This document shows, piece by piece, positions 20,635 to 29,603 of a stretch of DNA of 34,401 nt. Source of the stretch: Octopus bimaculoides (taxonomy: Eukaryota); contig NC_069008.1 in NCBI RefSeq assembly GCF_001194135.2, positions 8,164,189 to 8,198,589 on the forward strand, read 5' to 3'. The notes under the pieces are model-generated. The model had not been told where the DNA came from. It saw only the letters and a list, made by a program, of their open reading frames with translations, and made no database searches. A program made the translations under genes and the position numbers. Position 1 is the first letter of the stretch, and the number at the start of each line of letters is the position of its first letter.

Positions 20635-20845
20635 ACTCAAGCCTGATTTGAAACCCACTCACTGTTCATTGTGTTGACTATTTGGAGAGGGAGAGAGAGA
20701 GAAAGAGAAAAAAATATAATAGAAAGAAGCAAAATAATAACAAACAACAAACAAACAAACAAAGAGCAATAGAGCAAAATCCAAAATAATCACGAAAAGA
20801 AAAAACATAATACCTTGATTCACTAACAATTTGCTCATTGATATA

Positions 20846-23800
20846 ATGAAGCCATCGTCAACTGAGAGAAATCTTCAAAACATAAAATACAACTGGATCA
20901 ATGTGAATGATGACAGCGACAATAAGCTTGCAGAACTTGGTAACGATGACGACCTACTTGCGAATCCTAGCAGCCTTGGTCGGATGTTGCAACATATTCC
21001 TAAAGGTGAATACTCACAAACGCAGAGGGACGTTGAAATTTACTGCAGCAGCCAACAGTATATGTTGAAGGAATTTCTGACACAGAACGTCGGGACCAAA
21101 TTACAGATATCGTCTCAAATCGATGACAAAATTAACATCAACAATGCTACTGCCTTGCGTGATTGTTCGTGTCTTTACAAGTCACAAGAAAGCATTTGGC
21201 AGAATACTGACGAGGACCTTGTTGATACGGAGGAGGGAGAAGATGAGAGTAGAAGCCAGAACGCTAATTATGCTCCGACAGCCGTTGACTTTATTGACGA
21301 ACCTATCCCACATGTTTTGGACATTTCTTCCTGTGGTTCTACAAATCTGACTAACAGGGTTGATTTTAACTTTCCTAACTCATCGGGTGACTCTGAAATG
21401 TGCAAGGGTAGAAGCCCGGACTCAATCGAAATAACCGTACCAGCTTCTCAGCTCCCAAAACTTGCTTCGTGCTTTGTCACAAGCAATTTGGACTATACCC
21501 CTACATCCACTTTGGACTCACCGTTTAAGATATTTCAAGATTCACCAAAAGAAGATTCACCAAAGAAGAATACACCTAATCAGAACAGATTCGACTACGA
21601 GTCTTGTGATGGTTCTAAACTCGACTTCGACGAAGTTTGTGAGTTGCCATTTAGTGAAAGTAACGCCGAGGTGTGTAGTGATCAGAATTCATACTCATCC
21701 GGCATTACTGTGAGTAGTGATGATGAAAATACTTACGACAATTCACTCAGGCCAGACCGTTACTATAACAACAGATATTCACCTTCTGTCGATATGCTCC
21801 AGAGAAAGTATAATTTCGGTGAAACCGATAGTACTACTCCCACCCCTGATCTTTCAAATAATGTGCAGCAAGTTTCTTCTGAACGCCACCTGCAAAATGA
21901 ACGTAGTCACAAGCACCAACACGACGACCTCATTGTAGTAAATAAATCGGAAGCTTACAAAGAGGCCTTTGTATCGAGTCACGAGACTAGTATTAAGACA
22001 TGCGGTAGTATTACACCAGAAACACAACACCAATCTCAATTGTACAACATTTTAAAACCCACGCAGCATCCGGGTCTCAACCACTTATCTTTATTTCGCC
22101 CTCGAATCTCTCCTCCTCAGAGCGCCAATGTCGTTAACTGTGCTGCTACGCAGCCTTCGCTCCCTCAGTCTTTTGTTCGTAGTGACAAAGTCTCGGGTTG
22201 CAGTTTAACAGACGACGTCAAAAGAAACAGAAAGCCAGTGCTTAAAAACCTGAATTTTTTGGATGACCGACTAACCTATCCAGAAATAATAGACTCTTCA
22301 GAAAAAATAACCGAAGAGTATTTAGGCAGACCAGAAAACATCGGTAATATATTTGTAAAAATTCCTCAGCTTATAACAAATACAAACAAAGAAACATCTA
22401 CATCCAGTTGCACAAAAGCAAACACAACTATGAGCGCATATGCACTCACAACCACAGATCTAGATACAAACACAATCATAAATAAAAACATTGACCTGTC
22501 CACAGTTAAAACCGGCAAAAGTGAAGCACAATGTTGTCTGCCTAGATTTTCTACTACAGAAAAAATACAGAGATTTCCGAATCAAGTCGACAACTCCTCT
22601 CTGAACTCAGACCCAAGGGACTTTCGAACTAGCCCCAACAGGGACACTGTTACTGTTACAAGAGATACTGTTATTACAGGGGAAAATCGTAGCATTAACA
22701 AGCTCCCCGAAGAGAAAACCTGTCACAGCGGGAGCCGAATCGTGAAGGTTGTTCAGGGAGACGTCTCTGGAGCTCACCGAGACATTGACGAGACTCATGC
22801 AAGTGAAAAGTGTATTAATGATAATGAAATATCAAGTTCACTAAATATCGATGAGACGTATAATATGGAGGATGTATATAATGATACCACTTCATTATAT
22901 GGATCACAGGATGGTAAAGATATCAAATATGAACCTATTCGTCATAACCAATATACCGATAACACACATAACTGGGAAGATGCATGTAGAGTTATCAACC
23001 CCTTGTATGAAACATGGGATAGTAAAGATATCGAAAGCGAAAAACATACAAACCTTGGCTGCAACAATAAAAGTAGTCCCTCAAAAGATAGACATAAACC
23101 TAAAACCCAAATCGAGAAAGACAGAAGCGAAGAAAAGGAAGAAGAATCAGTTAAAAGCAGCAGCAGCAACAACAACAGCAACAATAATAATAATAATAAT
23201 AATGATGATGATGAAGATGGTGATGTTGATGAATGTAATAATGTAGTAGAAACCGAAGAAAAGTGTGACCGCGTTGATACTTTGTCTTTCAACGCAGAAT
23301 CTGGTGGCGGTGTTAATCATTCGGGTGTGTGTAGTCTGAAGATGGATAACAGAAACCACTTCAGAAACAGCGACAATGATTCATTAGCTGCGACCGTTGG
23401 TGAAAAGAATTATTCTGATGCTATCGTCCCGTCTTACTATACTGCAGCGGCTGTAGTAAGTGCGAGAACGGACGATTCTCAGATGTACGGTTCACAGAGA
23501 GAGGGGGGCGGGTACAGCAAGAGTAATAGTGGTAGCCACATCTTCGCAGACTTTGATTGCATGAATTCAGCCTCGCAAAACGAGACCTTTCATTTTAAAA
23601 CTCAGACAGAGGAAAACCAAATAGAAGAAGAAGAAGAAGAAGAAGAAGAAGAAGAAGAAGAAGAAGAAGAAGAAGAAGAAGAAGAAGAAGAAGGAGGAGG
23701 AGGAGGAGGAGGAGAACCTACAAAACCCCATACAAGCAACAATGTTTTAGCAGAAACAGGACCGAAGCATCAACCCATCAGCGAGCCATCTTATTGCAAT

Positions 23801-26800: not shown

Positions 26801-29603
26801 GAACCGAAGTGTCATCATGCTGAAGTTTCGTTAATGTGCAATGAATGCAACGGGAATGCAAACTTTTCTCACACAAGCAGTTCACAGACAAATATTGTTA
26901 ATGGCTGTAGTTACACCGATGAAAATGTTATCAGAAATGACGAGGAGAACCAAAGAAGACAGAAGGTCGAAGAGCATGAGAAAAACAATAAGAGTAACAG
27001 AAGAAAGCCAGAGTCGAAATGTCAGTCCGTTGTGAGTCCATCCAGACACAGAGATGTTAGCATACACGGATTACAGACGAATATATTGGACCGTAGCAGA
27101 AATGGTATTGTCCAAACGTTTTCGAATGCTGTCCTTAATTTCTGCAATAATGTCCATGCAGTCGGCAATGTAGAAGAAAAGGAAAACGAAACAGGGCATT
27201 CTTCAGCGAGGATAAACACAAAATATAGAGATCCAGGTGTATGTCGAAATCCGACGAACGCAGATTATTCAGACGTGTGTGAAAATTGGAATAACACAAA
27301 TTATGAAAACTCTTACATACGTGGAAACTCGGAAAATTTAAAACACAAAACATCAGAAGCAAATGGGAGTCAGACAAAAGCAAACCACAAAAACTCAGAA
27401 AAAGGAGATAAGAAACGAGAAGGAAAACTAGTAACGAAAATCCTGAAAGGCAATAATGGTTTAGCTGAAATAGAAACAAAACCTCACACCATTGAAGGTC
27501 ATTACGGAAATAATGCAGCCAGCGACAGAGCCAACATCTCTTACAGAAGCAATTCACAGATGGATAGATTTAATGGTGACACCAATAATGATGTCACTAA
27601 TGATCGATTTTATCCCCAAACTCAGGAAGACAAGGAAGACCGAATAAGCCAAAAAGAAGGAGGACATACGGAAACTGGTAATTGCAGCAGCTCTTTATCA
27701 AAACTTGGTTCTATATGTCAGTCTGTTGGTAATCCAGTTATTTGCAGTGATGCCATAAGTAGCTTGCAGACGAATATCCTAAATCCGATCAGTAATGACA
27801 TTGTCGAAAGGGGTTTAAATAACCTTTACTATTTTCGCAATAATGTCCCTGCTCTCGTCAGTGCACAAGATGACGAAACAAATCAGACCTCAAACAAGAT
27901 GAATGCAACAAACGGAAACTTGGATGTAAGTCGAACCACAACGCAAATAAGTTGCGATAACTCAAACGACATTGGGAAGTGGACGAATTCCATCTGCGAG
28001 AACTTAGAGGCACATGAAAATCGGGTGGACGCCAGTTGTGGAAACTGGAATGTAAATCGAAAACGAGCGAGTGAAAATTGTGAAAATTTGTACGTAAGTG
28101 GAGATCAACCGGGAAACACAGACGTAAGTGAACATTCTAGAAATTTGAATTACGTTTACTCAGATATAAGCGGGGATAGAGTGAATTTATATCGCGGGAA
28201 ATTAGAAAACGGAGATATAGAAGGAGAAGAAATGTCAATGAACATCCACAAAAACAACAACGATTTAGGTGAAACGGAACCGGAGCGCCATCCAAGAGAG
28301 GTTCCATTTCCATGCAATATTACAGTAAACGCGAAAGCAAACTTGTCTGAGGTAAACAGTTCAAAGGTGGATAGCTTCAACGGTTGCAGCGACGTTGTCT
28401 CAGATACTGGCCACGTCATTAAAGATGCAACTAGGGATGATCGATTTTATCTGAAAACCATGCCAGGCGATGAAGATCAAAGGGAAAAGGAAGTGGAAGT
28501 AGAATACGTGGAAACGTTTAATAGCAACAGTTCTTTAGCAAAACCAGAGTTAAGATGTCAATCCGTTGATAATTCAACTACAGATTCGCATACCACAGTA
28601 CATGAGTCACAGGAGGCTATCTTAAGCGACAACAACAACAGCAGCAAAGATGTCGTTGGACGTTCGAATGGCAGTCGAAATTCTGGCAGTACTGTCCCTT
28701 TTTTTAACAATGCAGAAGATAACTCACCAAAACAGTTCTCAAACGGAACTAACCCAAATTACGGAAACTCTGATGTAATTGGAAATTCAACAAATGGAAA
28801 TTACGGAAATTCGGAATATGAAGAAGATAAGGATCAAGAAATATCAAAGAAAATCGACAACGGCAACAGTTATTTAGGTGAAGCGCAACTTACGCATAAT
28901 TCCACGAAGGTCCCATTTCTGTGCAATGCTGCAGCAAGCAAGAAGACAGACTTTCCTTACACGAGCCGTTCACTGATTCATGACTCTCACGGCTGCAGCG
29001 ATGTTGTCTCAAATTATAACCACATTGAGGAAGATGTGGCCAGAGATGATCGCTTTTCTCCTAAAACCCAGGCAAACGAGGAGGCTCGAGGAGGTCAAAA
29101 GGAAGAAGAGTGTGTGAAATCCGACAACAGCAGCAACAGCTCTTTACCTACAATAAGTCCTGTTTGTCGGCCCGTGGCTAATCCACCTGTATGCAGTGAT
29201 GCCGTAAATTGCTCACAGAGCAGGAATGATACTGTCAAAAAGTGTTCGAACGACGTTCGTAATTGCTGCAGTAAGACTCTCTCTGCTCTCGACAATGCTA
29301 ACGATGGTGGCTTAACAGGAGAAATATCAAACAGAACGAATACAAATTGCAAAACCATGGATGTGGACGGAAATCGGACGAATGCAAATAACCTCGCTCA
29401 AGGTTTAAGTGGAAACTCGACAAATGCAAGTTACGGAATCTCAGACTTAAATAGAAATCACGCGAACATACCGCTGTTTCAGATTGAAAATCCCAATTGT
29501 TCCGATGATCAGCGTGTCCCTGCGGCCAATGACAAGATAGCGTCTTCCCCGATGATCCTCTCAATCGATCAGCAAGAATCGTTCTATTCTGATCTCCCAT
29601 CAA
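20846..29603 (+). CDS. Giant coding exon (about 2,919 aa) of an uncharacterised Asn/Ser/Asp/Glu-rich, probably disordered, tandem-repeat protein; gene likely continues 3'
   Basis: An 8.8-kb stop-free frame in AT-rich DNA. In-frame TGA at 20816-20818 precedes the ATG at 20846 (A at -3). Internal microsatellites are all triplets and there are no TE insertions. A strong donor AA|GTAAGT follows 29603 (phase 1). Read-through would stop at 29692 inside a SINE. No signal peptide, TM segment or known domain was recognised. Confidence 0.85.
23624..23713 (+). repeat. Coding (GAA)23(GGA)7 giving E23G7
   Basis: Counted directly; in frame with the CDS. Confidence 0.95.
23747..29500 (+). repeat. Eight diverged coding tandem repeats (609-822 nt; about 203-274 aa)
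   Basis: Anchors LxE.. at 23747, 24377, 25199, 25970, 26789, 27461, 28265 and 28874, all in frame. Each is followed by N[DG]C, DRFY, CQ[PS] and DIVExCSN-type motifs. Confidence 0.9.
25832..25915 (+). repeat. Coding (GAA)28 giving E28
   Basis: Counted directly; in frame with the CDS. Confidence 0.95.

Follow-up and report, generated by a model that had tools for sequence, protein, structure and literature searches.

Does the repeat-rich DNA of Octopus bimaculoides hold a single giant coding exon, and if so, what kind of protein would it encode? The question was raised by a stretch of 34,401 nucleotides (nt) of contig NC_069008.1 (RefSeq assembly GCF_001194135.2, positions 8,164,189 to 8,198,589 of the forward strand), referred to here as the window; all coordinates below are positions within it. 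Positions 20635-29603 had been predicted to form one transposon-free exon of about 9 kb, inserted as a huge disordered segment into an otherwise conventional protein. In the analysis described here, the segment on balance is likely to come first among the coding exons of an octopus gene without detectable relatives, and its product to be a disordered repeat protein.

Open reading frame

On the + strand, frame +2 was open from 20819 to 29689. It was preceded by an in-frame TGA at 20816-20818, the first ATG thereafter was at 20846, and a TGA closed the frame at 29690-29692. From ATG 20846 to 29603, the last position before a candidate donor, the open reading frame (ORF) spanned 8758 nt and 2,919 codons; read through to the closing TGA, the product was 2,948 amino acids (aa) long. 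Over 20846-29603 this frame contained no stop codon, whereas each of the remaining five had 122-328, and 200 mononucleotide shuffles of the interval averaged 196 and never fell below 161. Elsewhere the window's open stretches reached at most 139 codons, in the flanks. The possibility that the frame is open by chance is excluded, and 20846-29603 is, with very little doubt, protein-coding and under selection. The 8.76 kb without a stop codon that had first drawn attention to the locus was thus confirmed. The segment is a single coding exon of more than 5 kb (8,758 nt open from ATG to donor), its continuity as one exon being deduced from the unbroken frame.

Tandem unit architecture

Two thirds of the exon consisted of exactly eight head-to-tail units (aa 962-2904, 23729-29557), a feature on which the original prediction was silent. 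Units were delimited by BLASTP of one segment against the whole protein, by MAFFT alignment, and by a hidden Markov model (HMM) built from that alignment. U1 (aa 962-1170, 23729-24355) was recognised in the alignment and by the HMM with a domain score of 306 and an independent E value of 9e-96, and U2 (aa 1171-1447, 24356-25186) by BLASTP, alignment and HMM. Alignment and HMM defined the other six: U3 (aa 1448-1705, 25187-25960), U4 (aa 1706-1975, 25961-26770), U5 (aa 1976-2200, 26771-27445), U6 (aa 2201-2467, 27446-28246), U7 (aa 2468-2673, 28247-28864) and U8 (aa 2674-2904, 28865-29557), all on the + strand. Units were 206-277 aa long and scored 236-306 bits each, with HMM coverage of aa 963-2891. 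Repeat families at the DNA level (D9-D19) had spacings of 609-882 nt, the same periodicity as the protein units. Judged from these alignments, the eight-unit architecture is as good as certain, and the gigantism of the exon would be due to eight-fold tandem amplification of the unit.

Identity between units was 28-42% at the protein level and 54-65% at the nucleotide level. About twenty alignment columns were conserved in at least seven of the eight units and clustered as short motifs (L-x-E-T-E-P-x-C-Q-P, F-N-G-C, R-N-D-R-F-Y-P, C-Q-S-V, N-D-I-V-E-x-C-S-N and N-Y-G-N-S-D). A 14-residue (42-nt) sub-repeat with the approximate consensus N-Y-G-N-S-D-V-x-G-N-x-T-N-x was present in the tails of U1-U8 (24231-29442); it produced an autocorrelation peak at lag 14, and spacings of 42 and 84 nt within families D10 and D11. 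The differences in unit length were located in these tails. The last unit was followed by a short unique exon tail (29558-29603, + strand) ending in phase 1.

The first 961 aa (20846-23728, + strand) formed a unique, acidic, N/S/T-rich region with N8, E23 and G7 tracts. The unit HMM gave noise only over these residues, with no degenerate unit copies, and the idea that the whole exon is repeat-derived was therefore rejected. Near the end of this region, a perfect in-frame (GAA)23(GGA)7 microsatellite (23624-23713, + strand; period 3, 100% matches) encoded E23 G7, and a second perfect (GAA)n tract in U3 (25832-25915) encoded E28. Both tracts are pure and uninterrupted, which suggests recent expansion, and the length of the poly-Glu runs is probably polymorphic. 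The tract lengths may be unreliable if the assembly was made from short reads.

Frame maintenance and repeat content

Codon-aligned units were compared in all 28 pairs, giving synonymous divergence (dS) of 0.7-1.4 and ratios of nonsynonymous to synonymous divergence (dN/dS) of 0.35-0.71. When substitutions were simulated in the repeat region at 0.2 per site, which is no more than the change of each unit since duplication, a mean of 47 new stops appeared (minimum 29, 200 runs); the observed number was 0. With dN/dS below 1 in 28 of 28 pairs and no stops despite about 59% nucleotide identity between units, the proposal that the exon is under purifying selection was upheld. As read from the units, constraint on residues is moderate to weak and constraint on the frame is absolute.

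Tandem arrays were called with Tandem Repeats Finder (TRF) in the ORF and in 23.4 kb of non-gap flank. Four arrays lay inside the ORF, with periods of 15, 3, 3 and 21, all multiples of 3. The flanks contained 32, of which 25 had a period not divisible by 3. Arrays of such period numbered 0 in the ORF against 9.3 expected (Poisson P ~9e-5), in agreement with the claim that dinucleotide microsatellites are missing from it. Self-BLAST of the window returned 12 pairs of interspersed repeats, all of them flank to flank and none touching the ORF. A random 20-kb locus of Octopus vulgaris (L001) served as an independent repeat library. It shared segments of 70-96% identity with the flanks at 808-920, 2406-2859, 5403-6062, 6136-6350, 7160-7824, 8189-8263, 10894-11589 and 29652-29722, and no common repeat with 20846-29603. 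The 8.76 kb had been claimed to be free of short (SINE) and long (LINE) interspersed elements, and neither comparison placed one there. Transposable elements and frame-breaking microsatellites are absent and only arrays of period 3n are tolerated because selection keeps the frame. The flanks had been described as carrying an insertion or microsatellite every few hundred bases; they are repeat-rich, but the spacing was overstated, since 10.9-15.1 kb is free of microsatellites (Helitron debris is present there).

These results bear on whether the frame belongs to a functional host gene at all, or is instead the ORF of a transposon or virus, or that of a pseudogene that died recently and is still open by chance. 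The neighbourhood is rich in transposable elements, and no annotated homologue was found although O. vulgaris proteins are in the database searched. Against this, no integrase, Rep/helicase, reverse transcriptase, transposase, capsid or other Pfam domain was found in the ORF, which had no viral relatives and no similarity to the flanks or to the repeats of the O. vulgaris locus. The frame was kept while the units reached dS of about 1, where some 47 stops would be expected under neutrality, and transposable elements and non-3n microsatellites were excluded from it. A non-functional origin is accordingly most improbable, and the segment is treated below as part of a host gene.

Start codon and acceptor

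The strongest acceptor-like site in 20500-29750 was a candidate 3' splice site at 20620-20634 (+ strand), with 13 pyrimidines in 15 positions followed by TAG, so the acceptor that had been called plausible at 20634 remains so. The 211 nt that follow (20635-20845, + strand) are 49% A, contain no ATG, and are closed by stops in every frame; the ORF frame has six, the last being the TGA at 20816-20818. They would form a non-coding leader (putative 5' untranslated region). ATG 20846-20848, in the context ATAATGA with A at -3, is a likely start because the leader is closed in all frames and carries an in-frame TGA at 20816. The start codon thus probably lies within the giant exon itself. An in-frame acceptor between 20819 and about 20900, which would admit upstream coding exons, was also considered and rejected, as no convincing polypyrimidine/AG site was seen there.

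The leader changes the placement of the segment. Since it is closed in all frames, the acceptor at 20634 cannot link any upstream exon in frame, which makes the giant segment the likely N-terminus of its protein. The original prediction did not hold on this point: the first 211 nt of the proposed exon are non-coding, and the exon would be N-terminal, not an internal insert.

In its strict form, that prediction made the exon a giant segment that is alternatively included in a conventional cytoskeletal adaptor of the giant-ankyrin or spectraplakin type, in frame with conserved domains. Giant exons for unstructured tandem-repeat segments are documented in giant ankyrins (PMC7401806), and both splice sites, acceptor 20634 and donor 29604, are plausible. 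However, an in-frame upstream exon is barred by the three closed frames of 20635-20845, and no ankyrin (ANK), ZU5, death, plakin, spectrin or GAS2 signal was found in the ORF. Plakin, spectrin-repeat, CH, EF-hand and GAS2 domains were all missing from the 2,948 aa encoded within the window, and ten flanking open segments of at least 70 codons, upstream and downstream, gave no ankyrin-related Pfam match. No homologue of any kind was found, and such domains could lie only downstream. The vertebrate giant ankyrin exons are internal, and those of Drosophila are 3'-terminal, following ANK, ZU5 and UPA domains (PMC7401806), whereas the octopus exon has its own ATG after a stop-filled leader. The adaptor analogy was abandoned, and an insert of this kind is very unlikely.

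Donor and 3' boundary

A candidate 5' splice site, AA/GTAAGT in phase 1 (29604-29609, + strand), matches the donor consensus. The motif alone is not diagnostic, because nine other GTRAGT motifs lie within the ORF, seven of them in codon register with GTA-AGT encoding Val-Ser. The site is favoured by its position: it lies 46 nt past the last unit and about 25 nt ahead of a SINE, and coding-like sequence stops there. Of the strong donor originally described, a plausible consensus GTAAGT stands, and the diagnostic value of the motif does not. From motif and position together, its use appears somewhat more probable than its bypass.

If the donor is not spliced, the giant exon would be the terminal or sole coding exon. 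The frame would then continue for 29 codons to the TGA at 29690-29692 and yield an all-disordered protein of 2,948 aa with no conventional domain, for which a SINE insertion supplied the present C-terminus and stop. The frame is indeed open through the donor to 29689, the nine internal GTRAGT motifs are evidently not used to break it, and no coding-like ORF or Pfam match was seen in the 4.8 kb downstream. That downstream stretch is short and includes two assembly gaps, however, and the consensus donor falls exactly at the end of unit homology and of coding-like composition. Sequence past the donor is T/A-rich and intron-like, and exact look-up of the 2,948-aa read-through product returned nothing on record, that is, no such gene model. 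A terminal or sole exon is thus a less probable outcome, though one of some weight; a smaller share of the probability falls to other arrangements. In the preferred reading the giant exon would come first in the coding sequence, whether or not further exons follow it downstream.

The SINE itself (29628-29735, + strand) is tRNA-like, 5'-truncated, and located in the presumed intron. Most of the sequence of the 29 read-through codons and of the TGA at 29690 comes from this element, which supplies the last ~21 codons and the stop. Copies in the window at 2406-2607 (-) and 2632-2859 (+) aligned with it, as did seven in the O. vulgaris locus (82-86%). No Rfam family reached its gathering score in the window, which leaves the SINE unrecognised by that scan, and nothing relevant to the SINE core sequence was found in the literature. 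The two window copies are inverted, 24 nt apart and complementary over 125 nt (83%), and could form a hairpin; a perfect 11-nt tandem array adjoins the pair (2199-2272; TCTAGGTACCC x 6.7, 100% matches). At 16586-18152 of L001 (Octopus vulgaris OX597824.1), the SINE core occurs eight times at a spacing of ~184 bp as a SINE-derived tandem (satellite-like) array.

Properties of the predicted product

The 2,919-aa product contains 498 acidic and 300 basic residues (net charge -198), is rich in N, S, E and D, and is composed of 34% N+S+T+Q and 2.9% Cys. Mean hydropathy of the first 40 aa was -1.13, and the maximum for any 19-mer was 0.88. As the N-terminus is hydrophilic and no 19-mer exceeds 0.88, no signal peptide or membrane segment is evident. 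AlphaFold2 (AF2) modelling of the unit from the 8-sequence alignment gave a predicted local distance difference test score (pLDDT) of 40.3 and no secondary structure. For the N-terminal 925 aa, modelled from the single sequence, mean pLDDT was 30.6 and three short helices were predicted. On these models, which have a shallow-alignment basis, the product is quite probably disordered, in keeping with the disordered segment first envisaged.

Composition also invites a different assignment, to a secreted, acidic, Cys-bearing repeat glycoprotein of the matrix, egg-coat, mucus or adhesive type, with its signal peptide elsewhere or atypical. Molluscan extracellular matrices commonly contain acidic repeat proteins. 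Three Cys columns are conserved in at least six of the eight units, and the product has 62 N-x-S/T sequons and a strong negative charge. Yet there is no hydrophobic N-terminus and no membrane segment, and the in-frame stops of the leader rule out a signal-peptide exon further upstream. The number of Cys per unit varies from 3 to 11, hence no fixed disulfide pattern, and no folded domain was predicted. Secretion is therefore improbable, and an intracellular product is retained here.

Homology searches

Pfam returned 0 families at E<=1 for the whole product. A word-seeded HMMER search of 5.8e9 clusters gave no match for the whole protein (poly-E, poly-N and poly-G masked) or for the eight-unit profile, and when aa 1-925 were compared with 1.84e9 representatives by full phmmer, no credible homologue emerged. 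The lone phmmer match, a bacterial repeat protein, covered only the acidic low-complexity stretch 813-863 and was discarded as spurious. PDB sequences compared with the N-terminus and the unit profile yielded nothing, and metagenome and viral contigs searched with single proteins contained no relatives. Nothing relevant to a giant exon in cephalopods was found in the literature. As a search control, an 86-aa LINE tail from the window (6094-6351) gave 38 matches, one of which was an O. vulgaris protein; the database therefore holds octopus proteins. Among the O. vulgaris proteins in it, the giant ORF had no annotated counterpart, which leaves two options, an orthologue that lacks annotation or a gene of narrow distribution.

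Comparison with known giant exons

AHNAK is encoded by one ~17-kb exon of tandem ~128-aa units, and exon 13 of MKI67 contains 16 tandem 'Ki-67 repeats' of ~122 aa. By analogy, the octopus exon appears architecturally closer to AHNAK and Ki-67 than to a giant ankyrin. Here as there, a giant exon owes its size to tandem duplication of a 100-300-aa unit, short motifs are conserved in each unit with drifting linkers between them, and the product is largely disordered and intracellular (as predicted for the octopus protein). The octopus protein has fewer units (8), and these are longer (206-277 aa), much further diverged (28-42% aa identity) and strongly acidic. The start codon, moreover, appears to lie in the exon, and no flanking folded domain (PDZ, FHA, PP1-binding) was identified. 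No Pfam, PDB or database match to the AHNAK or Ki-67 family repeats was obtained, so the likeness is one of architecture and not of detected homology.

The giant exons of ankyrin-B and -G, which are neuron-specific, and those of the Drosophila giant ankyrins share with the octopus exon a multi-kb length and an extended unstructured polypeptide. The octopus exon differs from them in opening with a non-coding leader and ATG and in having no ankyrin-family domain or BG-box-like homology, the BG-box being common to giant ankyrin-B and -G. Giant ankyrin-B has a module of 15 tandem repeats (PMC7401806); these are short, basic and microtubule-binding, in contrast to the long, acidic octopus units. 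The central exons of gel-forming mucins and secreted repeat glycoproteins are likewise giant, S/T/N-rich and tandemly repeated, with only 3n length variation. The octopus product, however, lacks a signal peptide and VWD, CysD and cystine-knot domains, is not dominated by Pro/Thr, and has repeats that are old, diverged and not homogenised. Exon 11 of BRCA2, with eight BRC repeats, was taken up as a lead and rejected, as the motif is different and no Pfam BRCA2-repeat match was found. According to PMC12457776, long internal exons have a tendency to code for disordered regions and show an enrichment in tandem repeats. The octopus exon follows this trend, being long, tandem-repeat and disordered, with indels confined to 3n; it departs from it in its extreme size and in being apparently first coding and not internal. 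Exons of giant size that are built from repeats and encode disordered segments are already familiar, so no long-standing question is opened by this locus.

Proposed origin and function

The proposed account is as follows. The exon would begin with the 211-nt non-coding leader (20635-20845) and ATG 20846, and run for 2,919 codons to the GTAAGT donor at 29604. Its first 961 residues would be unique low-complexity sequence, and the other two thirds would derive from ancient tandem amplification of a ~0.75-kb unit into eight in-frame copies. Selection would keep the frame open and preserve a short motif set in each unit while the linkers drift. The product would be an intracellular, extended, multivalent scaffold displaying eight copies of short binding motifs; a scaffold function is suggested by the sequence features and must be regarded as speculative.

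Several observations weigh against the reading of the exon as the first coding exon of a relative-free gene with a disordered repeat product. Evidence for selection comes from the paralogous units and from frame maintenance, no orthologue having been retrieved. Identity at codon positions 1, 2 and 3 was 62, 60 and 57%, and because these values differ only slightly, residue constraint is weak. The AF2 input was shallow (8 sequences) or a single sequence, so that low confidence is weak evidence of disorder. A Cys content of 2.9%, partly conserved in three or four alignment columns, is odd for an intracellular disordered protein, and such frequency and partial conservation would fit an extracellular one. 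The missing O. vulgaris match may reflect missed annotation rather than lineage restriction, and the assembly is a gapped draft. With these points taken into account, the reading given at the outset is still held to be the likelier account of the segment, with moderate confidence.

Flanking sequence

The flanks are interrupted by seven assembly gaps, runs of N of 54-757 nt, at 955-1251, 4714-4767, 6353-7109, 9802-9945, 19853-19952, 30036-30480 and 32579-32978; the giant ORF has none. Some ORFs listed for the window (for example 6100-7167 and 29873-30754) are artefacts because they read through N. The LINE reverse-transcriptase C-terminal tail used as the search control (6094-6351, + strand) is interrupted by the gap at 6353. 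It has 84% identity to an O. vulgaris 'hypothetical predicted protein' on a 100-Mb chromosome record and 83% identity to a protein from the ENA metagenome assembly ERZ22665968, which evidently contains octopus host DNA.

A PIF1-like helicase fragment was found at 13001-13402 (-) (PF05970, E 2.3e-10) and, from its sequence, is most likely Helitron debris. The ORF at 11184-11402 (-) looked by eye like a helicase C-terminal remnant and was without a Pfam match. Positions 13340-13556 are repeated at 19007-19223 (88%). Inverted interspersed repeats occur at 5420-5607 and 5847-6034 (188-nt arms, 79%) and at 409-870 and 10310-10790 (492-nt match, 74%), and several inverted interspersed repeats in the flanks are common to the O. 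vulgaris locus.

Implications

At this locus, frame-preserving selection carves an island free of transposons and microsatellites inside repeat-saturated DNA, and tandem amplification followed by long divergence under that selection has built what is predicted to be a giant disordered protein. If the exon is expressed, few single coding exons in an octopus genome would be larger, and it would represent a family apparently unknown outside the lineage. The eight units offer natural variants of one motif set that could be used for finding binding partners. The locus also points to a probable omission from cephalopod gene annotation. It may be, although this is held tentatively and at somewhat less than even confidence, that the exon belongs to an octopod- or cephalopod-restricted giant gene missed by proteome annotations; the gene would encode an acidic, disordered, multivalent protein of ~3,000 aa that arose by eight-fold amplification, and its repeated motifs would constitute a new interaction module, possibly at work in a cephalopod-specific tissue.

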